Assembly (NCBI GenBank): GCA_009859145.1
Contig: VRVR01000004.1
Coordinates: 276,934 to 340,933, forward strand
DNA length: 64,000 nt
Reading direction: 5' to 3'
DNA from: Andalucia godoyi And28
Lineage: Eukaryota > Protista > Jakobida
The translations under genes were made by a program, and so were the position numbers. This document shows positions 262-49,181 of the stretch, piece by piece. The notes beneath the pieces were generated by a model that was given only the letters and a program-made list of their open reading frames with translations, had not been told where the DNA came from and did not search any database. Position 1 is the first letter of the stretch. Every line of letters begins with the position of its first letter.

Positions 262-2541
262 ATGTCGCATTCTGAAATAATCACTGACTCGTCGTCGTCA
301 GCGTCGTCGGCTTCGGTTGCAGTGCCTTCAAGTGCACCTCTTGCGTCCCCGACTGTGCATTCCAGAACTTCGTTTTCGTTCAGGCATCCAACCTTTTCGT
401 CGTTTCGTTATGCTCCATCGTATGAATATCAGTCGCATGCTGTGACCATGCAGCATCCGTATCTGAGTGACCGTCACCACCACCTTCACCACCATCATCA
501 TCATAATCTGTCGCATGGGTTTGGTTCCCACTCTGTCCACAATGGACATGTGCAGCAAGCACAGCATCTGTCACATCCCAGTCTGCCCCCGACACATCAT
601 CACCATTCTCATCACCATGGTCCTGCACAACAGCACGTGATACATGCAAGCAGCCACCACAGCAGCCATCCGCATCACATGCTTGTCATGGGAAAGGTGG
701 CATCAGCAGAGGCCGGTAACGGGTTCCTTGCAAATTCAACCTTTTTTCATCAAAGTGCACCTGTTGCTTCTCCATTGGCTGCTGCTTCGTCTGGCAGTAC
801 AGCGTATAACGTGGATCGCACCCCATCGAATAGCTTGTCTACATCTCCTGGAAGCTTTCACAGCCGATTTTCGTCCAAGGAGATTGCACCTACTCTGTCT
901 GTTCCTGGGCAGCCTCGTCATCAACATCACTACCAGCAACAACCACAGCAGCTCCAAGAAGCTCAGCAGCGGCTATTTCCTGCGTCTGCGGCGGAAATCG
1001 AAACACACGCTGCGGAGCTGGCTGCGGATGCAACTGCAATTGGTGAAAAGGAGCGGCGAAGGGTCACGCAGGCATGTGTGCAGTGTAAGAAAATCCACCG
1101 ATCATGTGACTCGGGGACGCCGTGCACCCGGTGCTCGGAGCGCGGCATTGCGCATGAGTGCTCGTATGGAGATAGACGGAAGCGAGGACGCAAGACGTCG
1201 CCGCAGGCCACCAACACACCAACCTCTGTAGGTGCTTCGGATGCTTCGAGTTTGGGTATTGCCAATGCTAGAGCAGATGGAAAGTGTAGCTTGTTGGACA
1301 GCCGGCGAGATGCGAGTTCGAATTCCGGCTCCGAGGAGGGTGATTTACTGACAGAATCCCCGGCTGCCGCTCCGGTTGCAATGTCTGTTCCTTCCAGCCA
1401 ATGTTCGAATCAGGTCACTCCGAGGTCGCTGATTGTCAAGCCGACTCCTGTCCATGCGTCTGCGGTTTCTTCACAATCTTCGTCTCCTACTATGGCTCCC
1501 TTCAATCAGTATTTACCGACGAAGTTGGGGCATCCACTTTCGTTCCCCTCGGCGCCTGTGAAACATTGCTCTTCCATGCAGTCTGGAAACGCAGTGAACA
1601 TGATGCCCCTCCCATTTGCGAAACGCCAGAGGACCGAAAGCAATTCGTCGTGCTCTGCTGTCGAAAGCATTGTTCAGGACTGTGTTGCAGACTTGTTTTT
1701 CCCGATTTTGGATGTTCGCTCCAAATCATGCAACGATGAACAAGACCATGCAAAAGGTCTCGAAGCGAAGGTGTTGGCATTGCTTCAGCGAGCTTGTCGT
1801 CTTCCATCATCATTGCGTCCTGAACAGCGAGCGAAACTGAATTCCGATCCGATTATTACCTTGGTGCCATCAACTGCAGCAGTCAAACTGGTGTCTGGTG
1901 CTTTGGTTCATTGTGATTCACCATCTTCCTGGCATCCGCAGTCACCTCCGTTCCACGGACAGATCATATCTGGATCGACGTCTTCCGCCAACGTGATGGA
2001 TTCAATGCCCGTTCCATTCTGCGTGTTTGATGGACACGGCAACATTGTGTCACATAACTCGGCATTTATCGAATCTTTTGGACAGTGTAATGGTGATAGC
2101 CAGTCCGTTGCGCGCTCTGCAGTTCGGTTGGAGGACCATCCTTCAACGAACCATGCCATGTCTCCCGGATGTCCGACGATGCGCTCTCCATCGGAATCTG
2201 CGTCTTCAGATGGGTCCAACTGTTCCGGTTGCTCATCACCTACCATGCTGCCAGCGCAGGCGCCGTTGTCTTTGTCGGCATCGTCTTTGCGGAATTCCCA
2301 TGTTATGACATGCATGGACCACGCTTCGTCTGTGCTGTTCGCACATGCCGTTGCGGACGCATTGTTGGGCGTGAAAACTGGAAAAAATCCAGAAGAGACT
2401 ATTCATGAAGGCTTGTTTGGCCACGTCGACTTTAAGATGAAGGTGCGTGCAGGCGGATGTGACTGGTTTTGTGCCTGCCGAGCACTTCGAGGTGCTGACG
2501 GACTGTTGTTGTGGTCCTCAGCAGTGTTTTCACCTTTATGA
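262..2541 (+). CDS. Zn(II)2Cys6 binuclear-cluster transcription factor with His-rich disordered N-terminus and C-terminal PAS-like segment (Ert1/AcuK/Rds2/Gsm1-like architecture)
   Basis: RRRVTQACVQCKKIHRSCDSGTPCTRCSERGIAHECSYGDRRKRGRK fits CxxC-x6-C-x5-CxxC-x7-C with a basic flank. MPVPFCVFDGHGNIVSHNSAFIESFG resembles a PAS N-terminus. The track starts at GTG 241; the first in-frame ATG is at 262. Confidence 0.85.
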   Translation: MSHSEIITDSSSSASSASVAVPSSAPLASPTVHSRTSFSFRHPTFSSFRYAPSYEYQSHAVTMQHPYLSDRHHHLHHHHHHNLSHGFGSHSVHNGHVQQAQHLSHPSLPPTHHHHSHHHGPAQQHVIHASSHHSSHPHHMLVMGKVASAEAGNGFLANSTFFHQSAPVASPLAAASSGSTAYNVDRTPSNSLSTSPGSFHSRFSSKEIAPTLSVPGQPRHQHHYQQQPQQLQEAQQRLFPASAAEIETHAAELAADATAIGEKERRRVTQACVQCKKIHRSCDSGTPCTRCSERGIAHECSYGDRRKRGRKTSPQATNTPTSVGASDASSLGIANARADGKCSLLDSRRDASSNSGSEEGDLLTESPAAAPVAMSVPSSQCSNQVTPRSLIVKPTPVHASAVSSQSSSPTMAPFNQYLPTKLGHPLSFPSAPVKHCSSMQSGNAVNMMPLPFAKRQRTESNSSCSAVESIVQDCVADLFFPILDVRSKSCNDEQDHAKGLEAKVLALLQRACRLPSSLRPEQRAKLNSDPIITLVPSTAAVKLVSGALVHCDSPSSWHPQSPPFHGQIISGSTSSANVMDSMPVPFCVFDGHGNIVSHNSAFIESFGQCNGDSQSVARSAVRLEDHPSTNHAMSPGCPTMRSPSESASSDGSNCSGCSSPTMLPAQAPLSLSASSLRNSHVMTCMDHASSVLFAHAVADALLGVKTGKNPEETIHEGLFGHVDFKMKVRAGGCDWFCACRALRGADGLLLWSSAVFSPL

Positions 2542-2714
2542 TTACAGTTTTTTTGAAGTATAATCGCTTATCTGTTGCTGCTTGTCCCAGATCCTCATGA
2601 GGAGTTTGCTTTCTCTCTGGCCCTTTTTCCTGCGGCTACGTTTGATCGTGTGTTTTGCTTCTTTCTATATTATGTATTGTATAATGCATTGTGCATCATG
2701 TGATGTTTGCTTTT

Positions 2715-2760
2715 GTGTTCCGTGTTCCGTGTTCCGTGTTCCGTGTTTGCGTGTTTGCGT
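2715..2760. repeat. Tandem GTGTTCC heptamer x4 followed by GTGTTTGC x2
   Basis: Directly visible in the 3' flank of the Zn-cluster gene. Confidence 0.85.
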
Positions 2761-3426
2761 ATTTTGTGTTCTGTTTCTCCAATGCTTCCGTCCTGTTTGT
2801 TTTGACGCTCCCGGAAGCTTCACTTACCGTCTGTGATAGCTCCTCCGTACGAATATCCGTTTTATGTCTCGTTTTGTAACTTCCCGATCGTTTTGTCTCT
2901 CCCGTGTCTGCTATGTCTGCTATGTCTTGTGTGGCATGGTGCTCAGCTGTTGCATGTTGTTGATGTTTTCCCCCTTAATTTTCGATGAATTCCATCGCTC
3001 ATTGAAACTCGTTCATCGTTCATCGCTCGTCAATTTCGCTCGTGATCGTTTTCCATTGTATGGACTCCTGTTCACGTTTTCCCGTTCTTGAAAATAAAGT
3101 AACTAATAATTAATTTAAAAAAAATAGAATCGTTCTGTTTCGCAAATGCTACGTGCAACCTTCTTGTATTGCGACTTGCGACATGCGCCTTGGGGCGAGT
3201 TGAGAATCGTCAGCAAAAATGCAATTTGCATTGTGTTTTCGAAATGCCGAATTCAACCTTTCCCAAGCTTCGCTCTCGTTTCCTGTGCTTTCTTTGCCTT
3301 TTGCTTTTGCTTTTGCTTTTGTTTTTTGTTTTTGCTTTTGTTTTCGATTTGTTTTTGTTTTCGATTTTCGATTCTTCGCGTGTACCTTGGATCTCTTTGG
3401 TGTTGCCTGCCTTGGCATTTCTTTGG

Positions 3427-5313
3427 ATGAATCGATTTCTACGGCGAATTGTTCCATTTCGGAAGCTTTCCACAACTCAAGGAGTTGGGAGGCCGTTTTC
3501 GTTTTCGCGCTTCAAAGGAAACGACGCGGAGTCCGCAGCAGGGACGCATTTGCATGCCAAGAATGCGCCTACAGCCTCGGATCTCAACGTTCCACTGCCG
3601 AATCTTCCTTCTGAAGCATACGAAGTTCATGTCCCGTTTTCCGAAATTGAACCGAAATTCAAGTCTTCTGCAAACAACACTAATACCAATGCTGGAGTTT
3701 CGAATCTGAAAGTTCGGCCGACGATTTCAAGCGTGAAGATTGCGATACCGGGTCATGATGCACCAGTGTCTCTCCGAGTGGTGTCCTACGATTCCAGAGA
3801 TGCGGTGTGTGCACTGGGCATATGCCTTCCTCCAAACCTTTCTATTGCTCCTTTTGTGCTGGAGCGCAGTTTCTTCCACATGCCGGTGTTGCCTATTCCA
3901 TCGAGTGCATTGCGGAACTCGGAATTTGACTTGACAACTGAAAAGGGAATTGCAGATTTTTCCAACGGAACTGGCGGGATGGTCCAGGCTGTGTGTTCCT
4001 TTAGCGACACTGTTCTTGCTGCTGAGTGTTTGACGGATCATGCACCCGACTACTTGGAAATCTTGACTCGTGCTGCCTGGTCCACGCGCTTCCCTCGAGC
4101 AGTACTCGACATTCAAAACAAATTCAATGCGGCAGTCGAGAATCAGCATTCTCAGCAGGCGAACGATAATGCTGCAAGTTCTGAAGTGAATATGCCAGCT
4201 TTGGGTGAAACGACGGATGCTGCGGTTGCAAGAATTCTGAGTGACGCTTCTTGGAAAATGGAGGATCCTGGGACTGCAATACAAAATGGAGCGTACTTTT
4301 CATCCTTTAGACCACCGGCTGCAGACGACCATCCGTTTTCTTTCGTGCAGCCTCTCAAGCCGCTTGATACCGCTTTTATTGACAGTCTGGACGAGAATGG
4401 GCTTGTGTGGACACCTGATCCGTCACAGTGTGTCGTATCTGCAGTCGGAATGCCGCATGACAAGTTGCTCCAGGTCATCGAATCCACTGTGATTCCTATT
4501 GTCCAAGCAGCATTTGCGAATAGCACGCATCCAAAGTTTCCAGCAATTCCGAATCCTCCAAGTTTCCAATTCCAAAGTGCAACATTTGAAGCTGTACACC
4601 CTGAACAGGCACTTACAATTCCACTGCATTTGCCTCCTCTGACGCATCTCTTTGTTGGTTTTCCCGGCCCGGCATTTTATCACCCGGATTTCGCAGCAGC
4701 TCTGGTTGCCCGCGCAGTTCTCGGTGGCGGATCATCGTTTTCTTCGGGAGGCCCTGGGAAGGGCATGCACTCTCGCCTGTACAAGGACGTAATGTCAGCT
4801 GGATATCCTTTAGAAAGCATCCATGCAAGGCTTGATCCGGCGCCGTCTCATGCTGCGACTTCTTGTTCCATATTTGCATTGACAGGCGCAGCGCCCCAGC
4901 AATACGTCGAGTATCTGTACATGGCTATGTTCACGCAACTTTCACGGTTGGTTTGGGATCCTATTTCCCCAGCAGAGCTTGCTCGAGCGAAGAACCAGGC
5001 AGTCTCCAGTCTTTGGATGGGTCTTGAGTCCAGAAAGCACCTTATGGAAGACTTGGTGCGGCAGGTAAGAAGGTATTCTGCATGGTTTTCCCTCGATGAT
5101 CTGTCGGATCAGATTTCAAGAGTTACCTCGGATCAAGTCATGCAGGTTGTGAAATCCATGGTTATGGGTGCAATCGACGAAAACAGCGGTTCCGTAGGCC
5201 GTGGTATGGTGCTATCTGTGTATGGTCAGACGAGCAACGTTCCTAACCGATCTGCTTTTGTGACGATGTTTTCAGAACACCTGTCGCAGTCCAAGAAGTT
5301 TTATCAGAAGTAA
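3427..5313 (+). CDS. PMPCA: Mitochondrial processing peptidase alpha subunit (M16B, non-catalytic)
   Basis: Glycine-rich loop LGGGSSFSSGGPGKGMHSRLY and C-terminal ELARAKNQ...LESR...EDLVRQV. ATG 3427 gives an Arg-rich presequence-like MNRFLRRIVPFRKLST. The track extension upstream is T-rich UTR. Confidence 0.9.
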   Translation: MNRFLRRIVPFRKLSTTQGVGRPFSFSRFKGNDAESAAGTHLHAKNAPTASDLNVPLPNLPSEAYEVHVPFSEIEPKFKSSANNTNTNAGVSNLKVRPTISSVKIAIPGHDAPVSLRVVSYDSRDAVCALGICLPPNLSIAPFVLERSFFHMPVLPIPSSALRNSEFDLTTEKGIADFSNGTGGMVQAVCSFSDTVLAAECLTDHAPDYLEILTRAAWSTRFPRAVLDIQNKFNAAVENQHSQQANDNAASSEVNMPALGETTDAAVARILSDASWKMEDPGTAIQNGAYFSSFRPPAADDHPFSFVQPLKPLDTAFIDSLDENGLVWTPDPSQCVVSAVGMPHDKLLQVIESTVIPIVQAAFANSTHPKFPAIPNPPSFQFQSATFEAVHPEQALTIPLHLPPLTHLFVGFPGPAFYHPDFAAALVARAVLGGGSSFSSGGPGKGMHSRLYKDVMSAGYPLESIHARLDPAPSHAATSCSIFALTGAAPQQYVEYLYMAMFTQLSRLVWDPISPAELARAKNQAVSSLWMGLESRKHLMEDLVRQVRRYSAWFSLDDLSDQISRVTSDQVMQVVKSMVMGAIDENSGSVGRGMVLSVYGQTSNVPNRSAFVTMFSEHLSQSKKFYQK

Positions 5314-5894: not shown

Positions 5895-5967
5895 ACCCGG
5901 TTAGCTCAGTCGGTAGAGCATGAGACTCTTAATCTCAGGGTCGTGGGTTCGACCCCCACATTGGGTG
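5895..5967 (+). tRNA. tRNA-Lys-CTT: tRNA-Lys(CTT)
   Basis: Full cloverleaf: acceptor ACCCGGT/ATTGGGT plus G73, D arm GCTCAGTCGGTAGAGC, anticodon arm TGAGA-CTCTTAA-TCTCA, T arm GTGGG-TTCGACC-CCCAC. Confidence 0.98.
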
Positions 5968-5971
5968 CTTC

Positions 5972-5981: not shown

Positions 5982-6872
5982 GGCCTGTTTTTGCAATTTG
6001 CACACACACAAAAAGGATTTTTTTCCTTTTTTTCGAATTTGTGTCAAGGTCGTGTTTTTGACAAGAAATGCTTGGCGACTTTTTTCAATGCGACAGCCGA
6101 CTTGGCCTTTCAAGAAATCGATCCTGAATTACACAGTGTCTTTTCTTAGATGTTTTCGCACGCTCGGCTGCCGGCGCCAATACGGAAATTCTCCATCACG
6201 TTCATTCAGAAGATGAGAAGAAGAAGCTGTAATAGCCAAATTCAAAGAATAGGCCTCGGATACCTTCGAGAAATCTCGTCGGACAAAGCGGACGCTGGGG
6301 AAGAGCAGAAAGAGATCACGTTCGAGCACGATTAAGGAATATCAGATCAAGCTGCTGTGGCTTGATTCAAAACCCATTCTACGTACCCCATCAAGACAGA
6401 ACGTTGCAACGACGACGATTGGGCATCTAAGTTCGCTGAGCATACTTTGAACCAGAACAGTTACGGTACTTGTGAAGCGGAAAGCACAGCACAGTTTTTG
6501 GAAAGGAAGCCGAAGACATTCTATTTGCAAGATTCAAGTGATGCACGTGGACGCTTGCTGTCGTAACCCGCTAGCGGAAAAGCCGCCAGCCGCAACACTA
6601 ACTGCGTGATATCGAATATGAGCACATCCGGATGACTGCCGACCGGATCCAAGTAGGAAGAGTGGAACACGATTCCGGTCGGGACACGGATCGCATCTCT
6701 CGTGAAATTGTTGTTCTGTTTTCTTTTTTTCTCTTTCCTCCACAAAGTTTACGTTTGCTGAGAATACTTGCCAAGCAAACCAGGAAGAAAATAAGCAGCA
6801 GGTCAGAGCATCTGATATGTGGGTGTCACAAAATCAGTGAGTGAGAACCGAGAAAGGAGATTTAAAAAAGCC

Positions 6873-9449
6873 ATGCACAGCGAATGTTTACGCTGCCTTA
6901 TTCTGTTCCTCATTGTGATGGTTGTCCTTCACACAGCCTGGGGACTGGAGGTGATCTCAAGAAAAGTAGTAGAATGCAGCACAAGTGAGTTTTGCAAACG
7001 AAAAGTGTTGTATACGCTCCGAGCCTCGTACACAGGACAGCGGGCGTGGACCGAACCGAGCCTCACCATCCAGCCCTCGGAAGTACTCTTGGATTCTAAC
7101 AGCAGACAGTGGGGGATCTCGACGCCGGACTCGAGTGCGGTTCGGCTTGATATTTCCTTTGCAAATGTCGCGGCGGTGTTCGGGATTTTCCGAAAGTATG
7201 CCAATGTATCGAACGCATACGAACGAAAGACTGTGTTTGTGAACCCGCTTTGCTACTACCCTGGAAAAGAGTGCTGTGTAGATCCGGTGGATTCCACGAT
7301 ATTTTATCTCCATTCCATCGAACGAAATTCAACGGTGTCATATGATGTTTTCGGCGTTGCGATGCTGAATCTGGCCGAATCTGTGGCTTCGCAGTTTCAG
7401 CTCGACGCTGGATCGCCAGCATTGACAATGGATCTGCGTGCTCAGGTCACATCGACATTTCTTCCAACTGCAGGATCCACTGCAGACTATTCTTACCAAA
7501 GGACCGTTCGAGGTGCAAACATGACGCGGACTGTCGTGGACAACAGCGCCACTCGACAGTACCTCGCCGTTAGTGAGCCGTTCGTCACCATTCCGCTCTC
7601 TTTTTCAACGTCCCTTGCATCGAGATCGTTGCTTGTGGAGCGCCAAAACACAGAAACAACCATGGTTGTTCCATCAAGTATCATTTCCACCAATGTAATC
7701 CGTTCGTTTGGAGTGTCCGATGCGACATTTCACAACAGCTTTCAGTGCGATCGGCCTTTGAATTTCTGGACGTACACTAATAATGCGGACAAATGGGACC
7801 AGCTGCAACCTTATCGATCCAACACTGTGAATGCAGCGACAGGCTGCAGCATGGCTCGCGATATCTCTTACTTTCCCAGTCCGCTCACGACGAACAACAC
7901 CGGTGTATTTGCGGTGGCGTTTGACTGCACATCGAATTCCTGGGACGTCTTCTTCAGTGTCTCGTTGCACGATTCTGCCATCAATATTGTCAAGAAACAT
8001 GGAACGCCAGTCATCACCGACAAAGGAATGTTCCGCGTCACCTCGGTGGAGCTGGAGTCTACCGGAAACACCTTGATTGGCATTTATGTTGACATCACAA
8101 ACAAGGATACAACAACCGGAACATTTGGAATTCTGCCAGCATCCTGCTGCATGCAACTCGCTAACGGGACCACAGACTGTAACTCAATTCACTTATATGA
8201 CACCGGGTCAAGGCCGTTTTCATCGTTCGAGACAGCTCGTTTTCTGTTTTCGGTCGACTTCGCATCTGTCATGAACATTCAGACGACGTGCCGCTTCCAC
8301 TTGTATCAGCATGCGGTGGTGGAGGACGATGTGCTGGTGGTCTTCAATGCATCGTTGGATGGCGTGGTGAAGATTCCGCGGACTCAGGAGTTTCTTGAGC
8401 AAGTCACCAAATCAAATCCATGCAATGCCCCAAAGAAGGTTGTCACCATTGAAGGGATTCAGTATTGTCAGCGTCCATGCACGAACGATGAGATCCATGA
8501 TGAAGCCTTGAAGATATGCGTCCCCGTGGGATGCAAACAACGATACGGATCGTTGAGACCGTTCTGGAATTCAACAGCGAAACAATGCGTGGCGTTCAAA
8601 GAGTGTCCCGCGTACCTTTCTCTCAACGAGGAAGCAAACATGTGTGTTGGAGAGCTTTCATATGATCCAAGCACGGAATCAGCCGGTACTTCATCCGACG
8701 GCGACAATCCAACTCCAGATATCATCGACCTGGAATCCATCATGCGAACCATCAACATTACTTGCGTTCACGGTGCCATGGGCAAAACGTCCAATGCTTC
8801 CAACGCACAGCGTGTTTGTGTTTGTGACAGCGGATGGACCAGTAAGCCATGGACGTACGCCGAGTTGTACATCAATCATTCGTACATCGCATGCTCCGTA
8901 CGGGACGTATCGAACTCGGAAACGAGTTTCGGCTCGACAAAAACCTCTTCATCGGACTGGTCGTCAAATGACATTATGCTGACGTGCATCGTCGGAATTG
9001 TGGTCTTGTTTGCGGTGGTTATTGTCTGGCTCGCTCTGGAAAAGTTGGTCTGCTGCTGTTTCCGCGACAAGAAGTCACACAAGGAGACACGGCAAAAGCG
9101 AATGAGGAGGTATGAACGACGAGTGATGCCATTGCGGAAGAAGACGCGCTACGACACAGATGATGACTTGAGCGAGCACGATGGAGAACAGCAGCAGCCG
9201 TCTTTAGACAGGAAAGATCAGCACAGCGACGTGGAAAGCGTGAGTGCATCGACCAAGAAGGCAGTGTCGACCAGGGAACCTCTCAAGAAGCCACGGATTT
9301 CAAAAACCGGATCGAAACATCAACAACACAAGTATTCCGGGAATGACGTTGATCAACGAAACGATGACGATGATCATGATGGCGATGGAGACGAAACCGA
9401 CAATGCGCCGGATTCGACCAAGGTCTCTCGTTCTTCCGACAAAAACTAG
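6873..9449 (+). CDS. Divergent HAP2/GCS1-like (fusexin, class II fusogen fold) type I membrane protein with Cys-rich and EGF-like stalk
   Basis: Signal peptide MHSECLRCLILFLIVMVVLHTAWG. Collinear HAP2-like blocks: LEVISRKVVEC..CKRKVLYTL; VRLDISFANVAAVFGIF..VSNAYE; MVVPSSIIS..FGVSDATF..QCDRP; FFSVSLHDSAINIVKKHGTPVIT; IYVDITNK..TFGILPASC; TCRFHLYQ..DDVLVVF. A TM helix near 8974-9050 is followed by CCC and a basic tract. Confidence 0.7.
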   Translation: MHSECLRCLILFLIVMVVLHTAWGLEVISRKVVECSTSEFCKRKVLYTLRASYTGQRAWTEPSLTIQPSEVLLDSNSRQWGISTPDSSAVRLDISFANVAAVFGIFRKYANVSNAYERKTVFVNPLCYYPGKECCVDPVDSTIFYLHSIERNSTVSYDVFGVAMLNLAESVASQFQLDAGSPALTMDLRAQVTSTFLPTAGSTADYSYQRTVRGANMTRTVVDNSATRQYLAVSEPFVTIPLSFSTSLASRSLLVERQNTETTMVVPSSIISTNVIRSFGVSDATFHNSFQCDRPLNFWTYTNNADKWDQLQPYRSNTVNAATGCSMARDISYFPSPLTTNNTGVFAVAFDCTSNSWDVFFSVSLHDSAINIVKKHGTPVITDKGMFRVTSVELESTGNTLIGIYVDITNKDTTTGTFGILPASCCMQLANGTTDCNSIHLYDTGSRPFSSFETARFLFSVDFASVMNIQTTCRFHLYQHAVVEDDVLVVFNASLDGVVKIPRTQEFLEQVTKSNPCNAPKKVVTIEGIQYCQRPCTNDEIHDEALKICVPVGCKQRYGSLRPFWNSTAKQCVAFKECPAYLSLNEEANMCVGELSYDPSTESAGTSSDGDNPTPDIIDLESIMRTINITCVHGAMGKTSNASNAQRVCVCDSGWTSKPWTYAELYINHSYIACSVRDVSNSETSFGSTKTSSSDWSSNDIMLTCIVGIVVLFAVVIVWLALEKLVCCCFRDKKSHKETRQKRMRRYERRVMPLRKKTRYDTDDDLSEHDGEQQQPSLDRKDQHSDVESVSASTKKAVSTREPLKKPRISKTGSKHQQHKYSGNDVDQRNDDDDHDGDGDETDNAPDSTKVSRSSDKN

Positions 9450-11788: not shown

Positions 11789-12079
11789 ATGTGGGGAACA
11801 AGGCTTTTGACGGTTGGAATGCTCGTGATGACGGCCGGCGGTGCGTATACAGTATCGGAACAGCGGCGGCGAAAACGAATCGTTTCCGAGGCGTTTCTGG
11901 ATCGAAATGCACACTTGACGGTTCCAAGTCGCCGGGAAATGTGGGAGGCTCTGCGCAAAAAACCAGAAGTTGACGTTGTGGTTATTGGAGGCGGTGCAAC
12001 GGGCTCAGGAATCGCACTGGACGCCTCGCTTCGGTATGGTTCTTTCTCCTCTTACACAAGTGTTCTTCATCTTTTTTTT

Positions 12080-12116
<37 letters not shown>

Positions 12117-13956
12117 GTTGCGGTGTGTGTGTGTGTGTGCGCGTGTGTGAAAGAAATGGAAGTAGTGGCAGTGTTTTAATGGTTGCGTACTGGTCTAATA
12201 TGTGTTTCTTGAAATATTTTGCCGATTGGCTGTTTTTTCCTCCTTTGGGTTCTTCTGCAGCGGTTTGAAAACACTGTTGGTGGAGGCAGATGATTTTGGA
12301 TGCGGGTCGTCGTCCCGGTCTACAAAACTGGTCCACGGGGGCGTTCGATACCTTGAAAAGGCAGTCAAGGATCTGGATATGGGGCAGTATCATCTTGTGC
12401 GAGAAGCACTTGCAGAGCGCGGAGTGTTTCTGCGAATTGCGCCTCATCTGGCCGAGGCGTTGCCGATCATGACTCCACTGTATAGCTGGTTAGAGGTTCC
12501 GTACGTCTATGCAGGACTGAAGGTGTATGACTGGCTTTCAGGTTCGGCGTCACTGCATTCGTCGTACTACTTGTCTGCGGACGAGGCCCGCAAGACTTTT
12601 CCAGCATTGCGAGCACATGACCTGAAAGGGGCGGTTGTGTACTACGATGGCCAGTTCAACGACAGCAGAATGAATGTGTCGATTGCTCTCACTGCTGCTG
12701 CGCATGGGGCACTGGTGTTCAACCACATGTTTGTCTCGGATCTGCTAGTTCGCGAGGTAGCGACCGATGGGAGCAAGATGTTCCAGAGAGGAGGCGCTAA
12801 GGGAGCGAAAAATATTGTGTTTGACTTTGAAAAGAAGCCTGGTGATGCTGGAGACGGCGGAGAAGCAATCGTCCCAAAATACAGAAAGGAAGTCTCCGGT
12901 GTTGTACTTCGTGATCCGGAGACGAATGCTACGCTCGCCGTTAGCGCCAAGGTGGTGATCAACGCTGCTGGATCCTTCTCGTCCTCCATCCGAAACATGG
13001 ATCCGACTTCTGCAACCAGAGAGGAGGCGTTGAGCAATGCAAAGGAAAAATCAAAAGAAAGAATCGGTTCTGTTGGAATTCACGTTGTTCTTGACAAGGA
13101 ATATTCGCCATCAACAATGGGCATGCTTATTCCGAAGACTGCCGACGGCCGCGTCCTTTTTGTTCTTCCGTGGATGGGGAAAACGCTTGCTGGAACCACC
13201 GATCGTCCCATGAAGATCACCGACAACCCCTCGCCGAATCCGGAGGATGTGGCCTACATTCTGGAGTACATCAACAAGTACTTGGATGTGTCTGCGGGCC
13301 CGAAAGACGTTCGATCGGCGTGGGCCGGAGTTCGGCCGTTGGCGCATCTGGATGAAAAGTCTGTGGTCGATGGAACGGCGAACGTGAGTCGAGAGCACGC
13401 AATCGATGTGTCCGCGGCTGGCCTTGTGAGCATAACGGGGGGAAAGTGGACGACCTACCGAAGGATGGCCGAAGAATCTCTGGACGAAGCACTCCGCGTT
13501 GCCGGCAACAAGATCGCATATCCTGCTTCTTGCAAGACAACAAAGTATCAAATCATCGGCGCACACGGCTACAGTGTCGATCTAGCCGGCCATTTGGAAA
13601 AGGAACACAAACTCGAAAAAGAAGTGGCCCGCCATTTGGCCCAAGCATACGGAGACCGGGCAGTGGAAGTCTTATCAATGGACCCGTCGGGAAAGCGAGC
13701 AAAGATCACTTCGCAACTTCCAGCATTAGAAGCCGAGGTCCTGTACGCAGTTCGCAAAGAATGGGCTTCCAATGCAATTGATGTTTTGTGCCGACGCACA
13801 CGGGTTGCATTCTTGGATCGTGCGGGTGCAATGAGCGCAATAGACCGTGTTGTCGCGATCATGGGAAATGAGCTGAAGTGGAGCGCCAGCAGACGGAAGG
13901 AAGAAGCCGCAAAGACCAGGTCGTACATCGCGACGATGACCGGCCTTTCCGACTGA
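11789..13956 (+). CDS. GPD2: FAD-dependent mitochondrial glycerol-3-phosphate dehydrogenase, two exons
   Basis: join(11789..12033,12261..13956). The intron GTATGG...CTGCAG restores DVVVIGGGATGSGIALDASLR|GLKTLLVEADDFGCGSSSRSTKLVHGGVRYL. Also SAWAGVRPL and ITGGKWTTYRRMAEE. Confidence 0.95.
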
Positions 13957-19356: not shown

Positions 19357-19419
19357 GCGTGTGTGTGTGTGTGTGTGTGCGTGTGTGTGTGTGTCTGTCT
19401 GTGTGAGTGCGTGTGTGTG
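19357..19419. repeat. Imperfect (GT)n microsatellite upstream of the Myb gene
   Basis: Directly visible. It produces the spurious CVCVCV N-terminus in the ORF track. Confidence 0.9.
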
Positions 19420-19455
19420 CGGTCCTGTTCTGTTCATTCCTTTGTTTCTGTAGGC

Positions 19456-22585: not shown

Positions 22586-25087
22586 TCATCCGTCCGATCC
22601 GTCGAGGCCATCGGATCGAGAATCGTCCATATCAAGATCGTCGTCATCGTGCCGACTCGCATTGTTGCCATAAAACCCTGGAGAATACACGTCTTGATCG
22701 GAGATGTGCCAATTGTCAAAGTCATCATTGGACTTGAAATCCTCTGATCGATATCTGCTGGGGATCGCAGAGCCATTCGAGGCAGGTGGTGCTGCAAGAT
22801 TGCCCGAACCTTTCGACGACGGCCGAACAATCGAGCCACCCATACGACCTTGCATTGCAAGAAGATGCGACTCCGCCGCGTACGACGACTGGTAGGAATC
22901 CATGTCGTGGACTTCCTCTCCGTCGATGGATTCTTGCCACGTCGAATTATAATAATCAAATTTCTTCTGTCGAACAATGGCAGCCCATTCATCATTCGTC
23001 TCCAGAATAACATCCAAAGTCTGGTCCGTCATCTTGCGGATCTCTTCATTTGAATCGTACAAAAGTTCCACAAGATACGGAATGATGTGGGGATGGCGCA
23101 GCAACGCAGAACGGGCAATGGGCTTCGTGACCAGTGCAAAGAACACATAGGAAATTTGTAGAACCATCTCGTCGTCTTCCTGCTTGTCGACAAGCAAATC
23201 GCACAACGAATGAACGAGAGCAGATTTTGACACCAGATCCGCACACTTTTCGTCATGCATCATCGTTCCGATCAAGATGACAATCTCCAGCACAACGTCG
23301 TCTTCTGCATATCCAGGAACAAGGTTCTTGGTCATGAATTCAATGAGGTGGTAACGCACAATCATTCCAGAAAAGTCAATTGATTGCAAGTTGAGATTTG
23401 CCAAAGTTCCGAGCACTTCGACCAAAAAGTCCGATGCCTCATCGATATCTGCATTAGCGAACTGCGCAACACACGCCCCGAAATCATGCGCATACATTGC
23501 CAATCGCTTCTTCACAGAGTCATGCATCGAAAAGTTCCGCACGGCCTTCATCAACAACGGGTCTTGTGTACGCAAGGATCGCTGAACCATGACGTCGAGG
23601 CCCGTAACCGCGGTGCTTCGACCGCTGGCGTTCTGGTAGTTTTGCTGGACGTGCATTGGAACTGGGAAACCGGACATTGCCTCTGCGTTCCGCACATTGG
23701 ATGCCAAATTGACAGTCAACGCGACAAGCTCACGATTCATGTGCAACCAATCTCCCGACTGCGGATCGACTTCTGGGTAATTCAAGAGCAGATCCATGAC
23801 CGCTGAGAGTCCGTCTGAGTATAAGAACATGGACCGGCAATTCTCGTCCAACGTGAACTGGTACAACAATCGCAGCACGATTTGCAGGTGCTGTGACTTT
23901 TGGAGCAAAGCTACCAATCGAGGAACAACCCCGCCGTCCAGGAACTGAGTTCGAAACGACGGATCAAAGGACAAGTTGATCATCAGCCGGATCAGTCTGT
24001 CCATTGAAACTTCATTCAGTGCCTTCTTCGCGGTTCCAAACAGCGCGCTGAGTCTCTGCGCAACTTCATGCTCTCTCATTTCATCCTTGTTCTCTGCAAA
24101 GATGGACAGCTTCTTCAAAAATGTCAGCGTGACTGTCAGCAACTCCGCAGACAGGTATGTTCTTTGCAATACTGAACACAGATAGAACACCAGATTCTTG
24201 TTTCTCATTTTTCTCTCAATTGCAATGTCCTCGGCGAGATTTAACAAGATGGAAAACGCAATCGTGAGCAGCGTATTCTGCAAAGGGGCAATTTCCTTCC
24301 TTTCTGCATCCTTGTCTCGAACGCTCCACCTCTTCATTTCCAACTCCACCATAGACATCACAACGGCCCCGACTTTATGCTGCGTAATAATCGGGTGAAA
24401 CTGTGAAAAGTGCGCCATTGCATAAAACACATACAGCAGATTCATCAGGTAATCATACGACTTCTTTCCTTCTTCTCTCAGCTCGCGGGACAGCAGGTTC
24501 ATGAGCGATTCATTGGTCGCAAGTAGTTCAAGGGCAGCAGGCTGTTTGGACAGCAGTGCAATCTTTGCGGATCCAACAGTCTTTTCCTTGATGTCCACCG
24601 AGTACAGAGCTTCCATATACTCTGACAAGTTGTTGATGCTGACATCCGAACCATCGACATTCTGCGAGTTGTAATCCACTGAATTTCGGTACTGCTGCTG
24701 TTGTGACGACGATGGCGGTTGTTTGTTCTGTTGTTGCGAAGACCTTTGCGAGATGCGTCGTTGAAGGACATATATGACGTCCTCGATCGAATTCAGCTTG
24801 GATGAATCGAGAAATCGAGAAGAAGCAACCAGCTTCTTCGCAAGCGCCGAAATATCCGTGTACTCGTCTAATTCACGCACCAACGAAATTGTCTTGTGTC
24901 CTTCTTTCACTTTGCAATCGATCTTCCGATCATTCGCGTCAAATGTCGTCGTCTCAACTTGGAAGTTCACAAGAATCGCAAGCTCGTTTGCATCCGCTTC
25001 AATCCTACCCACGCGTACCTTCTTCTTCTCTCGAGTCGCAGCCGGGGCCGCAGCCGAAGCTGATGAACTCGGCAATGTTTGAGACAT
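22586..25087 (-). CDS. KIFAP3: Kinesin-associated protein 3 (heterotrimeric kinesin-2 / IFT cargo adaptor, ARM repeats)
   Basis: LSEYMEALY, NESLMNLLSRELREEGKKS, LLNLAEDIAIERKMRNK, LTFLKKLSIFAENKDEM, KQEDDEMVLQI, FDYYNSTW. First ATG is at 25087. Confidence 0.95.
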   Translation of the reverse strand: MSQTLPSSSASAAAPAATREKKKVRVGRIEADANELAILVNFQVETTTFDANDRKIDCKVKEGHKTISLVRELDEYTDISALAKKLVASSRFLDSSKLNSIEDVIYVLQRRISQRSSQQQNKQPPSSSQQQQYRNSVDYNSQNVDGSDVSINNLSEYMEALYSVDIKEKTVGSAKIALLSKQPAALELLATNESLMNLLSRELREEGKKSYDYLMNLLYVFYAMAHFSQFHPIITQHKVGAVVMSMVELEMKRWSVRDKDAERKEIAPLQNTLLTIAFSILLNLAEDIAIERKMRNKNLVFYLCSVLQRTYLSAELLTVTLTFLKKLSIFAENKDEMREHEVAQRLSALFGTAKKALNEVSMDRLIRLMINLSFDPSFRTQFLDGGVVPRLVALLQKSQHLQIVLRLLYQFTLDENCRSMFLYSDGLSAVMDLLLNYPEVDPQSGDWLHMNRELVALTVNLASNVRNAEAMSGFPVPMHVQQNYQNASGRSTAVTGLDVMVQRSLRTQDPLLMKAVRNFSMHDSVKKRLAMYAHDFGACVAQFANADIDEASDFLVEVLGTLANLNLQSIDFSGMIVRYHLIEFMTKNLVPGYAEDDVVLEIVILIGTMMHDEKCADLVSKSALVHSLCDLLVDKQEDDEMVLQISYVFFALVTKPIARSALLRHPHIIPYLVELLYDSNEEIRKMTDQTLDVILETNDEWAAIVRQKKFDYYNSTWQESIDGEEVHDMDSYQSSYAAESHLLAMQGRMGGSIVRPSSKGSGNLAAPPASNGSAIPSRYRSEDFKSNDDFDNWHISDQDVYSPGFYGNNASRHDDDDLDMDDSRSDGLDGSDG

Positions 25088-25548
25088 TTTCAATTAAATC
25101 TTCCTCTTTTTTTTTCCCCTTCCGCGTCTTGATTCTTTTCTAACGTTCAGAAAACAAGCGCGCGCGCACACACACACACACACACAAGTACTGGTTAAGG
25201 AACAGGTCGTTGTGTGAAATTTAAAATTTAAAAAATAAATAATTTAAAAAACCAAATAGGTAATGTATAAAGTATATAACAATAATTAATTGAACAATCT
25301 CCCTGAAAAAGAAACCATAGAACGCTGATTAGGGCGTTTGAAAGAAACCCAATTCGGGGGTGTGTTAACGGTGAGTCTACGACAGTCACTTCCAAACACC
25401 CGTTCACGCTGTGTCGTGCTTCGTGTGCAAAGAGAGGCGACCGAAAACGATTTTTTGATGCGCAGCGGATTTGTTCTCTGTTTTTTGTTTTTTGCAGAAT
25501 CCCACCTTTTGGGCCTGGGTTTAGGTCCGAAAGCGCAAGAAGCGTTTA

Positions 25549-28268: not shown

Positions 28269-28639
28269 TTTTCGATCCGCCTCCTTTTATTCCGTGCGTG
28301 TCTATACGTATATATAAAAATGCGAAAATGTATGGATGTAGACCCGTGTGTGTGCACTCCTTCTTCGCTGCATAATCATTGTCAAACTTCTGGAAACAGA
28401 AGAAGAAGAAACGACGGATTTGTCTCCAATTCCCGCAAAACCGTTTGGCCCTTCCCTAGCATCAAGCAAAAAGCTAAGCTCAAAACGCCCTCCTTGCATC
28501 AAGCCTTGTTCATTTTGTTTTGCATTCCTTTCGCATTAAAAGAAAGGACTTTATTATTTTGATTCTGCATGTTTTCAAAGAATAAAAACCTAAACATCCT
28601 TAAATTGATTTAAGGAGAAACTCTTTGATTTCTTAAGAA

Positions 28640-28741
28640 ATGTTGCGAATTGCATTTTCAAGATTGGTGTCATCATCATCATCACCATCGGCTGCGGCAT
28701 CGTCGTCTGCTGCAGTTGCTGTGGCCAGTTCGAATGGAATG

Positions 28742-29912: not shown

Positions 29913-31475
29913 ATGAAGAACGCGCCAATGATTGTGACGCGGTTTGCATGGCTGGTGCTGTGTATGCTGAGTGTTTCGGCAGTCCAGAAGGTGCGATGTG
30001 CGGCGGAGGATCCTGCGGATGTGATCCCAGAATGCGACTGGGTTGTTCGAGGAGGAAATATGCGTCGAACTCTTTCGTGCCGGTCTTCGCAACCTGCTTC
30101 TGCATTTAAATTCCAGTCACGTCCGTATCCCGACCCCAACATACCCTATGACCATCCGCTGTGCTCGAAGCAGTATCCCGACCCTGATTGTCCAGTGCAG
30201 TGTCGGAGCTACTACTCTGCGTCATGGCAATCGAGCACGATTGGCATATCTGGAGAGTTTATCCTGGTGGAATTGACTGTCAGTGGATACGGTTCTCCGG
30301 ACAAGACCAACTTCCAGGTGTATTCTGCACCGATTGTGCTGGGTTTCAACGGCTCCGTGATCACTTCGCTGACGGACTGGGGATACTATAACACATTCAC
30401 TTGGGCCGGGATCGTAATCCCGCAGCCCTTTCTTGATCGAAAGGGCAGACTTGTATGGGGCAGCGCATGGGTGCAGTCTGATGACGATCAGTTCACCGTC
30501 GTTGTACCCTCTGGATACAAACAACCTCCGTATGTGTGGACCATTGAAGACGACTACCCTCGCAAACGCTGGTTTGCTACACAGCCCAACATTGTCGGCG
30601 ACACTGTGCTCTACACGGACTCCCACACCTACCCATCTTACTCGGGGCCGCCACAAATGCGAGATCTGTCGACCGGAAAACAGTTGTTCACGGGCCAGAA
30701 CGCGACGGTCCCATTCGCCAATGGCTTAGAGTTTTTCAAAATCCGGCTGCCTGGCGCCCCGGAAGATATGATTCTTGCCACGTCCACTTCTCCCTACTCG
30801 ATTTCCGGATTCAGCATGGATCTCTCGCGTACACTCCTTACGTTCCGACTGCCGTGGATCTCTAACGGATGGCGGCTCATTGCCATCGACGACACTGTCG
30901 GCGTTCTGTACGCATGGTCCTACGGCCTAGCAGGCGGTGTGGATGCTCAGGTATTTGCAGTCGATCTGTCGAATGGAGCTGTGATGTGGAACCAGACATA
31001 TACTCCAAACGACTGGGACGGAGTCGAGTCGATGTTTGTGATTCCCGGATTTGGTCTCGTGACGATATCTGCGACAATCAGCTACTCCCCAGTTCCGAAG
31101 AACGTCGTACGAGTGTTTGCACTGAAAGACGGTGCCACACTGTGGACGCTTTCATCAGTTGATTTTGCATGGACGGGCGGAGCTGTCGGACTGTCTCACC
31201 GCAAGATTGCCATTCCTCGGTTAGGTCAGTCCAAGCCGTACACATCCATTGTGGACGGGGTGACCGGTAAGGAACTCATGCAGTGTCCAGGTCTTCCGTA
31301 TGCCGGCTCCGGATATGGCTACGCTCTGAGTTTGTCGGCGGTTGAAACTTCGGATGGGCTGACGGTGTTCCTATACACTACTCTCGTATATGATTCCCAG
31401 TCGGCATCGTACATCCCTCATTTGCAAGCCGTCACTTGCCAGATCCCATGGTCCACAATCGGTTCTACCGCATAA
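29913..31475 (+). CDS. Secreted protein with PQQ/BamB-like beta-propeller motifs
   Basis: Signal peptide MKNAPMIVTRFAWLVLCMLSVSA. Repeats RDLSTGKQLF, FAVDLSNGAVMWN, FALKDGATLWT, VDGVTGKELM. Confidence 0.65.
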   Translation: MKNAPMIVTRFAWLVLCMLSVSAVQKVRCAAEDPADVIPECDWVVRGGNMRRTLSCRSSQPASAFKFQSRPYPDPNIPYDHPLCSKQYPDPDCPVQCRSYYSASWQSSTIGISGEFILVELTVSGYGSPDKTNFQVYSAPIVLGFNGSVITSLTDWGYYNTFTWAGIVIPQPFLDRKGRLVWGSAWVQSDDDQFTVVVPSGYKQPPYVWTIEDDYPRKRWFATQPNIVGDTVLYTDSHTYPSYSGPPQMRDLSTGKQLFTGQNATVPFANGLEFFKIRLPGAPEDMILATSTSPYSISGFSMDLSRTLLTFRLPWISNGWRLIAIDDTVGVLYAWSYGLAGGVDAQVFAVDLSNGAVMWNQTYTPNDWDGVESMFVIPGFGLVTISATISYSPVPKNVVRVFALKDGATLWTLSSVDFAWTGGAVGLSHRKIAIPRLGQSKPYTSIVDGVTGKELMQCPGLPYAGSGYGYALSLSAVETSDGLTVFLYTTLVYDSQSASYIPHLQAVTCQIPWSTIGSTA

Positions 31476-35147: not shown

Positions 35148-36677
35148 TTAGACAAACATGACATCCAGATCATCATCATCTGGCGTCTCATCGATGTCTA
35201 GCGGCTTTCCGTCCACTGCATACACACCGGGATCTTCCGTGTCAAGCGTATTTTTCGCAGCAAACACAGTCATGTCGTCCGTGGCACACTGCATCTGATG
35301 AGACGCAAAGTTACACTGGATAACGGTAGCTTCCCGACATAAACTGGCGGCCGGTACCAAGACCACGTCACTAGGCACCTGCGCATCGTATGAATAGAGC
35401 AATTTCGCGGCTGCAAAAACAAAAACTTTGACCGACGACACAGACCGCTTGGCAAGAAATGAAAAAACAGTGCCGTCTGGAATTCCCTTTGATGGGCCGT
35501 TTCCGACAAGTTCGATATTGGCAGGGATTGGGATACGCGACCATTTCCCACTGATTTGCACCATGTTTCCTGACGAATGGATGCCAAACGCATGAGCCTG
35601 CTTCCCAACTGCATCTGGACCAGCAAGGAGAGCATCCTCGTCGTTGTTGACCGCAAGGCCCATCGAAAGCGATGCTCGCAAGTCCATTTTTGATAGCAAA
35701 ATGCACTCCCAGTATACCCATTTGCCCTCCGGAAGAGCACAGTTTGCAGAAACCGAGGAATACTGAACATCAGACTCCTGCTTCGTGGCAACGCATCGTG
35801 TCTTTGGAGCGATCTTCACGTCTTTTGCGCTTGTCACTAAATGCACATTCATTTCTTTTGAGGCCGACTGGGCAGCTTCATCCGCCAGCTGAACCGAAGC
35901 AAGGGTCAGGCACTTTTCTACGAAAAATGACAGTGAGCCAGCATAGAGCCCGTCCATCGACGATATGCGTGGAATCGAATACTGTCCAGGTCCAGTGGAC
36001 GACGGACTCGGGCTCACGTTGGAAAACCCGTTTGCAGATCCATGATGTGTCTGGAAAGCAGTTTGAGACCCACTCCGCTCGAGTCCAGGATGACAGGCCG
36101 AGCACGACTGCTGATAGTTCGCATTTGGCGAAACCGAGGATCCAGAAAACGTCGAGTTGAACTGGGAAATCCCATTCCCATTCCCATTTGCATTCCCATT
36201 TGCATTAGCATTAGAGCACGACGTCGACCCGCCAGTGTTAATGGAAAGGATCAGTGACGACGACGAAGACGAATTGGAAAGCGTTGTCGGGGACGAAAAC
36301 GATGATGAAGACGGATTGTTGCTGTGCAGGTGGTTGCTGCCATTAACCGAGCCTGCGCCTAAGCCCGCACTCGTCGTGCTGCTTGATGAGGAGGAAAACG
36401 AAGAATAAGACGAAGGAGGTGGAGAGGTCGCAAAGGAGCTAGTAGAATTGCTGTGGAACTGTGCTCGAGAAGACGCACGCGGGCGGACCGTCACGAAAAA
36501 CGGAGTAGCGTCAATCTTCGTATGTGATTGAAGAGGAGGCGACGACGGCGACGACGAAAGAACGGAAGCTGAGGGAGAAGAAGGCTCCGAGTGTGAAATC
36601 GTGTTGTATCGAATCACTTCAGCTTCAGCACGACGACGCAGCATATGAGAATATGCAATGGAATGAGTCACGTCCAT
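35148..36677 (-). CDS. Ser-rich protein with C-terminal SPRY/B30.2-like domain
   Basis: VYWECILL..SLSMGLA..VGKQAHAFGIHSSG..GTVFSF..LVPAASL..IQCNF. First ATG after the (TG)n run is at 36677. Confidence 0.75.
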   Translation of the reverse strand: MDVTHSIAYSHMLRRRAEAEVIRYNTISHSEPSSPSASVLSSSPSSPPLQSHTKIDATPFFVTVRPRASSRAQFHSNSTSSFATSPPPSSYSSFSSSSSSTTSAGLGAGSVNGSNHLHSNNPSSSSFSSPTTLSNSSSSSSLILSINTGGSTSCSNANANGNANGNGNGISQFNSTFSGSSVSPNANYQQSCSACHPGLERSGSQTAFQTHHGSANGFSNVSPSPSSTGPGQYSIPRISSMDGLYAGSLSFFVEKCLTLASVQLADEAAQSASKEMNVHLVTSAKDVKIAPKTRCVATKQESDVQYSSVSANCALPEGKWVYWECILLSKMDLRASLSMGLAVNNDEDALLAGPDAVGKQAHAFGIHSSGNMVQISGKWSRIPIPANIELVGNGPSKGIPDGTVFSFLAKRSVSSVKVFVFAAAKLLYSYDAQVPSDVVLVPAASLCREATVIQCNFASHQMQCATDDMTVFAAKNTLDTEDPGVYAVDGKPLDIDETPDDDDLDVMFV

Positions 36678-36701
36678 CTTTCTTATTGAACAGGAAGACA
36701 G

Positions 36702-36702
<1 letters not shown>

Positions 36703-36770
<68 letters not shown>
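36703..36770. repeat. Compound (CA)n(GA)n microsatellite
   Basis: Directly visible between divergent genes. Confidence 0.9.
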
Positions 36771-43814: not shown

Positions 43815-44247
43815 GCAAAACACCAGCTTTCCTTTTTTCCACTCTTGTTTTAACTTGGTTTGTTTTGCTGCACTGAAACTTGAGAGGAGGCCACGGAGAC
43901 TTCCAGCAAAAACGGTCGTAGAAGGAGGCTACAGCAGTTCGTATCTTGTAAGCAGCAGAAAGAGGAAGCCCGAGGGAGGTTTCGGCGCGGACACGGTCCA
44001 CATTGTAGCTACCCTACTCGGTGTGTCCAAGACTCGTTGACAAAACTGGCGCAAACAAGTACACGTATTTATTATTTTCTTTTTCTTTTTCAATTTTAAT
44101 TTTGTATGTTATTATTATATTTTTTCTTCCGTTTTCGCTATCTGTCTTTTATTCGTCGTTTTTGTCTGCTGTTTTCCTTTGTCTGGTATTCAAGGTTTGC
44201 AGCGGGGTGTGGGTGCGTGTGTGGGTGCTTCTTCTAGGTGTGTGAAC

Positions 44248-47855: not shown

Positions 47856-47905
47856 GCAAGGTTGTTTCCAGTACGAGGTGAATGAACACGGAAGAAAGCG
47901 GAGGG

Positions 47906-49127: not shown

Positions 49128-49181
<54 letters not shown>

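Follow-up and report, generated by a model that had tools for sequence, protein, structure and literature searches.

A predicted HAP2-type membrane protein with a shortened domain II tip in the jakobid Andalucia godoyi and its relatives among protists

A 64,000-nucleotide stretch of contig VRVR01000004.1 of the jakobid Andalucia godoyi And28 (positions 276,934 to 340,933 of the forward strand, GenBank assembly GCA_009859145.1; hereafter "the window") encodes a membrane protein that is very probably a class II paralogue of the HAP2 type. The tip of its domain II is markedly shorter than in canonical HAP2, its ectodomain is extended by a Cys-rich stem, and it has relatives in many amoeba-like protists, spread over Heterolobosea, Amoebozoa, and Anaeramoeba, as well as in numerous environmental eukaryotes. 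The HAP2-type class II fold is known; what is new is this short-tip, stem-extended subfamily of fusexins. On balance, we favor the reading that the protein is a type I glycoprotein with a HAP2 fold, that it belongs to a divergent paralogous "short-tip HAP2-like" subfamily, and that it acts in cell–cell fusion; the chances that it is a direct part of the fusion machine are about even. HAP2, an ancient protein of sperm–egg fusion, is to our knowledge the sole gamete fusogen conserved widely among eukaryotes, and whether a protist is sexual is routinely inferred from whether it has HAP2.

The gene and the topology of its product

According to the list of open reading frames (ORFs) and the translation, an uninterrupted ORF extends over 6819-9449 on the plus strand, and its first ATG, at 6873, gives a product of 858 amino acids (aa). 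The identical product is already a called gene in the protein collection (P0001). A hidden Markov model (HMM) of the family described below scores 478 bits against this gene, its sole real match in the window. A weak HMM match at 3-251 on the minus strand was considered as a second copy and rejected, as it is merely a hydrophobic-plus-basic stretch. An earlier reading, made from the sequence alone, had ended the HAP2-like region at 8360, which is the end of domain III; the gene itself continues to 9449, and the part beyond 8360 encodes the conserved Cys-rich stem, an EGF-like module, the transmembrane (TM) helix, and the tail.

Hydropathy and sequence give the topology of HAP2, i.e., a signal peptide, a large ectodomain (about 680 aa), a single TM helix C-terminal to it, and a multi-Cys, basic tail (Table 1). 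The mature N-terminus, LEVISRKVVEC…C.RKV, aligns with the N-termini of Trypanosoma cruzi and Arabidopsis HAP2 in the profile alignment. The ectodomain has 10 N-x-S/T sequons in total; 12 cysteines lie in its first 500 residues and 12 further ones in the stem. On the cytoplasmic side, the CCC is followed by RDKKSHKETRQKRMRRYERRVMPLRKKTR, and multi-Cys, polybasic tails also occur in the relatives P0002, P0004-P0006, P0008, P0010, and P0011. HAP2 tails are described as palmitoylated and basic, and the juxtamembrane tail of the short-tip family resembles them.

Evidence for a HAP2-type class II fold

The monomer was modeled with AlphaFold2 using the homologues as alignment. The model has a mean predicted local distance difference test (pLDDT) score of 78.3, and 502 of its 677 residues reach at least 70; domains I and II score mostly 77-96, except for the loops at aa 191-209 and 225-241. 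When the model was compared with the Protein Data Bank (PDB) by Foldseek, the top seven matches were all HAP2 (E 2.7e-17 to 1.2e-13), headed by Arabidopsis HAP2 (5ow3, E 2.7e-17) and including Chlamydomonas HAP2 (6dbs, 6e18, and 5mf1) at E 2e-14 to 1.2e-13. Lower down came phlebovirus Gc (3e-10) and EFF-1 (3e-9), and then other class II proteins. Sequence profiles point in the same direction. Among PDB entries, a profile of the N-terminal half of the family matched T. cruzi HAP2 (5ow4, E 2.3e-5) best, followed by Arabidopsis HAP2 (5ow3), and the full-length profile found T. cruzi and Arabidopsis HAP2 at E about 3e-3, while a single-sequence phmmer search of the PDB returned nothing relevant. 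Because Foldseek and the sequence profiles agree, the predicted class II, HAP2-type three-domain fold is well supported. The sequence-only reading had described blocks collinear with HAP2 domains I, II, and III followed by a TM helix, CCC, and a basic tract, and had left the class II fold to be decided by an AlphaFold monomer model and Foldseek. The profile alignment and the Foldseek ranking bear out both the order of the blocks and the fold.

The features shared with canonical HAP2 (PF10699; 5mf1, 5ow3, 5ow4, and 7s0k) comprise the three-domain class II fold and type I topology, the N-terminal C…C.K.V motif, the Glu of strand b, the CC of strand c, a degenerate ij-loop with DQL..YR, a domain III of the form V/FVD.xN…CC, and the multi-Cys, polybasic cytoplasmic tail. 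The class II fold is likewise shared with EFF-1/AFF-1 (4ojc/4ojd), but these match the model far less well than HAP2 does and are unrelated in sequence; they are somatic fusogens of nematodes, whereas the window protein comes from a protist. The archaeal fusexin Fsx1 (7p4l), a class II protein with an added domain, lies outside the top 50 PDB matches of the window protein, shows no sequence similarity to it, and has an extra domain that is unrelated.

The model also matches bunyaviral Gc, both in the PDB (5g47 and 6egu) and among predicted viral structures (BFVD), where bunyaviral Gc is best at E 4e-11 to 1e-8. These matches raise the alternative that the gene is an endogenised viral class II glycoprotein of the bunyavirus-like Gc or retroelement env type. 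We regard this origin as very improbable, given that the HAP2 matches are better by 3-7 orders of magnitude and that the relatives are single cellular genes spread over several eukaryotic supergroups. Moreover, the gene stands alone as a cellular gene rather than in a polyprotein with a companion glycoprotein; its neighbors are housekeeping genes, no viral, transposon, or retroelement ORFs were seen flanking it among the window genes, and it has the local GC content (about 48% across the window).

A minimal domain II tip

The tip region, at nucleotides 7212-7352, reads ...NAYE(117)RKTVFVNPLC(127)YYPGKEC(134)C(135)VDPVDSTIFYLHSIERN(152)STVSYDVF..., so that the tip sequence quoted in the sequence-only reading is present as written in the translation. 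Strand b carries Glu117, the counterpart of the salt-bridge Glu of HAP2: NAYE corresponds to …KPYEE in T. cruzi HAP2 (HMMER) and to KPTEK in canonical Naegleria HAP2 (hhalign, used for motif correspondence only). Between strands b and d, the tip consists of a 10-residue bc loop (aa 123-132, VNPLCYYPGK), a short strand c (aa 133-136, ECCV), and a 7-residue cd loop without Arg (aa 137-143, DPVDSTI).

Comparison with the canonical Naegleria HAP2, whose sequence was taken from the supplement of PMC9928731, shows where the shortening lies. From the Glu to the CC there are 17 aa in the window protein and 42 aa in Naegleria HAP2, and from the CC to the His of SAHCL (or its equivalent) 13 and 31 aa, respectively, which makes the bc connection about 25 and the cd connection about 18 residues shorter. 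The same is seen against T. cruzi HAP2. Strand d (SYDVF) aligns in HMMER with WYSGY, with 78 residues in between in the T. cruzi protein and 35 positions in the profile, and the span from Glu to strand d is about 40 residues shorter in the window protein (about 40 vs about 78). The extended bc and cd connections that bear hydrophobic or amphipathic fusion loops are thus not present.

Other canonical elements are also gone. In canonical HAP2, the cd connection supplies the essential Arg that forms a salt bridge with the Glu (E126-R185 in Chlamydomonas, E117-R163 in Arabidopsis, and E121-R176 in T. cruzi; Fedry et al. 2018, PMC6089408), and in the window protein the cd segment that carries this Arg is absent. 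The alignments with T. cruzi and Naegleria HAP2 further show the absence of the SAHCL Cys, of the first Cys of CDKIG/CNKVG, and of the second Cys of C-x-CL-x-Q. At the CDKIG/CNKVG position the window protein has IRSFGVS (family consensus iNkiGis…C…DQ..FR), and the DQL..YR element is retained as WDQLQPYR. The partners of this ij-loop region are CNKVGVSYEAFSGQGSRCQLIRGSCLADQLEDYR in T. cruzi (HMMER) and ECDKIGVGYSQFRNQPRAC in Naegleria (hhalign). T. cruzi HAP2 is the best sequence-profile match in the PDB and itself has short tip loops; it keeps, however, the E121-R176 salt bridge and the canonical cysteines, which the window protein does not. As a possible substitute, Arg151 on strand d is about as far from the tip as Glu117 on the neighboring strand b and roughly in register with it, and it could be a replacement salt-bridge partner of Glu117.

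The sequence-only reading had listed the cd loop, the Arg, the SAHCL Cys, and the CDK Cys as missing and the Glu as kept, and this holds against T. cruzi and Naegleria HAP2. Its broader statement that the fusion loops are lacking needs to be narrowed: the long bc and cd connections are indeed gone, but two short, confidently modeled loops with aromatics (YY and IFY) remain. The aromatic or hydrophobic residues left at the tip are Y128, Y129, I143, F144, and Y145. Flavivirus E inserts into the membrane with short loops. T. cruzi HAP2 has been described as using three short non-polar loops and no amphipathic fusion helix (PMC6089408). Since both of these proteins act through short loops, a minimal insertion surface is possible in the window protein as well.

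In place of SAHCL, strand d carries an N-x-S/T sequon, one of three additions relative to canonical HAP2, the others being the 8-Cys stem and the EGF-like module. Of the 18 relatives whose sequences extend over the tip, 17 have the sequon at the SAHCL position, with N128 and T130 of alignment A5 invariant or nearly so. In the window protein, a few residues separate N152-S-T from the domain II tip, and a glycan so near the membrane-contacting end is unusual; it may shield or regulate the tip.

All 18 of these relatives are similarly short, with 30-40 residues from the Glu to the NxT, and nearly all have the pattern (N-A-Y-E)…C…CC…N-x-S/T. One is a complete ORF from a Pharyngomonas transcriptome assembly. 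This uniformity bears on the question of an artefact, that is, a missed exon, an assembly deletion, or a pseudogene. Some genes of this genome do have 5′ introns (e.g., that for glycerol-3-phosphate dehydrogenase, G3PDH), and in HAP2 genes introns often lie between strands b, c, and d (PMC6089408). Against this, the reading frame runs continuously across the tip, the model is confident there, and because the tip is short in every relative that covers it, the transcript-derived one included, it takes no hidden exon to explain the shortness; the earlier reading, which had seen no intron but named an extra exon as what would overturn it, is upheld on this point. The likelihood of an artefact is accordingly minute.

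Conserved candidate fold-back elements and added modules

Domain III, the linker between domains I and III, and the stem are well conserved, whereas the tip loops are not. The best-conserved block of the family is the Cys-rich stem (mean column information 2.11 bits; model pLDDT 86-93), with the consensus C..P…G..YC…CT.DQ…C.PV.C..KY.G.R..N…CE…C; it matched no Pfam family. A disordered linker separates it from the EGF-like module, both lying between domain III and the TM helix, and relatives show weak EGF_Teneurin Pfam matches. The tip loops are the least conserved segments of the ectodomain, at 1.46-1.53 bits per column. In some members they are hydrophobic (…SFFPLIG… in Balamuthia and CMFFTDP in P0014). 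Conservation of domain III, linker, and stem next to a variable tip is a pattern that fits a retained fold-back machine.

A family in several eukaryotic supergroups

When 1.84 billion representative proteins were scanned exhaustively with HMMER, 36 relatives were obtained, and 17 of the 37 sequences listed (the query included) fall below 1e-10. Word-index searches with the whole protein, the ectodomain, or a trimmed profile of 14 sequences returned only the query itself. The named members come from Naegleria fowleri (FDP41_011345), Willaertia magna, Pharyngomonas kirbyi, Balamuthia mandrillaris, Dictyostelium purpureum (DICPUDRAFT_76423, P0033), D. discoideum (DDB_G0290351, P0036), Anaeramoeba flamelloides, and A. 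ignava, and the rest from metagenomes. All named members are annotated as hypothetical or uncharacterised, one Anaeramoeba entry bearing the automatic UniRef name "GCS1/HAP2 domain-containing". We found no paper that describes the short-tip family or any member of it.

The closest relative, at about 40% identity, is made up of two adjacent fragments of one metagenomic gene, which appear as the overlapping calls P0003 and P0002 at 1275-3787 of locus L001 (JGI metagenome 3300042934, contig Ga0456364_0018013). The split call points to a frameshift, a short intron, or an error in the assembly. The genes flanking this relative show no synteny with the window.

The two Dictyostelium proteins are the weakest matches of the single-sequence search, yet a profile from which they were left out scores them at 174-193 bits. 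A separate AlphaFold2 model of DDB_G0290351 has Cyanidioschyzon merolae HAP2 as its best match (7s0k, E 2e-10), followed by Chlamydomonas HAP2, ahead of Fsx1 (E 1.6e-8). Two HAP2 homologues have been reported from Dictyostelium, the orthologue hgrA (DDB_G0276069) as well as hgrB (DDB_G0281923), the latter confined to dictyostelids, and both are needed for sexual fusion (Okamoto et al. 2016, PMC4910948). DDB_G0290351 is neither of these and is not mentioned in that paper, and so constitutes a third Dictyostelium gene with a HAP2 fold. Similarly, the canonical HAP2 orthogroup of N. fowleri consists of KAF0982544 and KAF0982545, while the family member is KAF0982415, for which BLAST detected no similarity to canonical Naegleria HAP2. 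A second "HAP2" orthogroup in the Naegleria pangenome tables, OG0010275, possibly represents the short-tip family.

The presence of canonical HAP2 beside a family member in Naegleria and Dictyostelium indicates a separate lineage that co-exists with it in at least two supergroups. The term paralogue, proposed from the sequence alone, therefore suits the family. A different view would be that no separate paralogue is involved and that this lineage has a single HAP2 orthologue, the present gene, which evolves very fast. No second copy lies within the 64-kb window, which is only a part of the genome, and insertions and deletions are known to concentrate in HAP2 tips (PMC6089408). The short tip and the extra stem, however, are common to Heterolobosea, Amoebozoa, and Anaeramoeba, and together with the co-existence of canonical genes this shared architecture places the split before these lineages, whatever later losses occurred in this organism. 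We consider a sole, fast-evolving orthologue improbable.

The family also differs from the HAP2 paralogues already described, namely Dictyostelium HgrB, Leishmania HAP2-2, and the second HAP2 of Plasmodium. These too are second genes beside an orthologue, but each is limited to a single lineage and keeps the HAP2-GCS1 motif, whereas the short-tip family extends over several supergroups and has lost the Cys of the motif.

Possible roles in cell–cell fusion

In EFF-1/AFF-1, the tip is short and lacks the canonical hydrophobic fusion loop, and a stem region is added. They are a precedent for fusion through trans-trimerisation rather than loop insertion. Measured against them, the window protein has a tip that is short yet partly aromatic, and the structural match to EFF-1 ranks below that to HAP2.

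In the model that we favor, the protein would have a role in cell–cell fusion, sexual or trophic, by acting as other class II proteins do: it would extend, probably trimerise, and fold back through domain III and the stem, thereby drawing the membranes together. Contact with the opposing membrane might be made in one of two ways. The first would be shallow insertion of Y128, Y129, I143, F144, and Y145, as in T. cruzi HAP2. The second would be protein contacts in trans or cis, in the manner of EFF-1 or alongside canonical HAP2; in this scenario, the conserved Cys-rich stem would probably serve as the interaction surface. A role in fusion is suggested because conservation extends to domain III, the linker, the stem, and the tail, and because HgrB and Leishmania HAP2-2 are themselves required for fusion. 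Where tested, second HAP2-type genes have been required for mating or fusion (HgrB, PMC4910948; PMC10630298).

Several observations weigh against this reading. The product is not HAP2-GCS1 as Pfam defines it. The Pfam model (PF10699, 515 positions) gives no match to the window protein even at E<=1 and none to the named relatives, although it scores 260 bits on canonical Naegleria HAP2 as a positive control. (The sole relative above the gathering score is P0012, with 43.8 bits over Pfam positions 332-501, a match that covers the equivalent of the linker and domain III.) In hhalign, the family and one canonical Naegleria HAP2 are collinear, but with a probability of only 1.7%. The tip Glu is present in 11 of 18 members and so is not invariant, and the tip loops are polar in other members (CPSRASCCDEGGE and CNNNEFCCSNG), which speaks against a conserved insertion loop. 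Finally, we found no mention of DDB_G0290351 in the literature.

Some of these features would also be expected of a repurposed fusexin, one that keeps the class II fold but serves, without merging membranes itself, in adhesion or recognition or as chaperone or co-factor of canonical HAP2. The protein has lost the canonical cd connection, the Arg, and several disulfides; conservation is lowest in the tip loops, which are polar in several members; a conserved glycan sequon lies near the tip; the block conserved best, the added Cys-rich stem, has the look of a protein-binding surface; and a co-existing canonical HAP2 could do the fusing. Yet domain III, the linker, and the multi-Cys, polybasic tail, which are elements of fold-back and fusion-site targeting, are conserved, and EFF-1 is a genuine fusogen without a hydrophobic loop. 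Variability of the tip, moreover, is typical of canonical HAP2 too (PMC6089408). We take repurposing as the most likely of the alternatives, albeit a rather unlikely one.

Feature coordinates and genomic surroundings

Table 1. Features of the short-tip HAP2-like gene, in window coordinates
Feature	Position	Strand	Basis
Complete intronless coding sequence, 858 aa plus stop, short-tip HAP2-like type I membrane protein	6873..9449	+	ORF list, translation
Predicted signal peptide, aa 1-24 (…LHTAWG/LEV)	6873..6944	+	Hydropathy peak aa 1-20
Domains I and II, aa 25-370, including putative first disulfide pair C35/C41 and long b/c/d strands	6945..7982	+	AlphaFold2, Foldseek
Strand b, aa 108-122, with N114-A-Y-E117	7194..7238	+	DSSP of model
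Minimal domain II tip, aa 123-143	7239..7301	+	Model pLDDT 86-93
Strand d, aa 144-161 (FYLHSIERNSTVSYDVFG), sequon N152 at 7326-7334	7302..7355	+	DSSP
Degenerate HAP2/GCS1 motif region (ij loop), aa 276-320 (IRSFGVSDATFHNSFQC…WDQLQPYR)	7698..7832	+	HMMER, hhalign
Domain I-domain III linker and domain III, aa 371-497 (…HGTPVITDKG…YVDITNKDTTTGTFGILPASCC…TARFLF…C.F.LYQH…)	7983..8363	+	Model pLDDT 94-96
8-Cys stem domain, aa 517-591 (C..P……G..YC…CT.D……C.PV.C..(K/R)Y…R…N…..C….C)	8421..8645	+	Consensus of A1-A4
EGF-like 4-Cys module, aa 631-674 (C.HG……C.C..GW………C)	8763..8894	+	Family consensus CG..G……C.C..G
Transmembrane helix, aa 702-724 (approx.)	8976..9044	+	Kyte-Doolittle peak up to 3.0
Juxtamembrane CCC (aa 727-729), polybasic tract, then acidic Ser-rich tail up to stop	9051..9152	+	Sequence

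The genes of the window lie on both strands; most of them consist of one long ORF, and 5′ introns are occasional. Upstream of the short-tip HAP2-like gene are a gene for an M16 peptidase and, after it, a tRNA-Lys(CTT) gene (5895-5968, plus strand), about 900 bp 5′ of the start codon; an Rfam scan of the window found tRNA only. Downstream, a gene for an ALG2-like glycosyltransferase is convergent with it. The window further contains genes for G3PDH, eL30, KAP3, a Myb factor, acetyl-CoA synthetase, a PUF protein, RNA polymerase subunit 2, a mitochondrial carrier, and others.

The FAD-dependent G3PDH is split into an exon with the N-terminal FAD-binding segment (11789-12268, …DVVVIGGGA…) and the main ORF (12379-13956, plus strand); as the two are in different frames, a 5′ intron is implied. 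The ORF for RNA polymerase subunit 2 (53315-56770, minus strand) seems to be without its extreme N-terminus. Introns in this window look few and 5′-biased. A Zn2Cys6 "fungal-type" transcription factor is encoded at 241-2541 on the plus strand and KAP3, the kinesin-II associated protein (496 bits), at 22586-25093 on the minus strand; both thus occur in one genome, and KAP3 implies a ciliated or flagellated stage.

Six ORFs of 438-1094 aa have no Pfam match (29913-31475, 35148-36677, 36964-40248, 48084-49400, 57601-59211, and 61060-64000, the last continuing past the window's end); their products are either specific to the lineage or very divergent. Low-complexity tracts rich in His, Gln, or Ser are common in the proteins of the window. 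Long intergenic di- and trinucleotide microsatellites occur at about 19363-19420, 36680-36743, 43880-44040, 47700-47900, and 28590-28700 and translate as CVCVCV, SLSLSL, or poly-C peptides in mechanically called ORFs. Judged from these peptides and not from the DNA, candidate units are (TG)n, (CT)n, (TGC)n, or similar.

Implications

The suggestion, made from the sequence alone, that the gene hints at cryptic sex in this lineage is not supported by this gene alone. The family does bear on the way in which HAP2 is surveyed. Reports that HAP2 is absent rest on the canonical protein only, and such surveys may therefore be incomplete. According to a 2026 preprint, the fusogen of amoebozoan trophic cells is unknown, HAP2 being missing from Cochliopodium and undetected in Arcella.

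In mechanistic terms, a truncated tip combined with retention of domain III, stem, and tail constitutes a natural test of the need for fusion loops in class II fusion, and the uncharacterised DDB_G0290351 is an immediately testable candidate in a genetic model, D. discoideum. A bolder possibility, which we consider unlikely at present, is that the family represents a second ancient fusexin lineage, possibly older than the split of Discoba, Amoebozoa, and Metamonada, that fuses amoeboid protists without the canonical loop, either in an EFF-1-like manner or in dependence on a partner. Such a lineage would have gone unnoticed because HAP2 profiles miss it. If true, it could explain trophic or sexual fusion in organisms where HAP2 has been reported absent.

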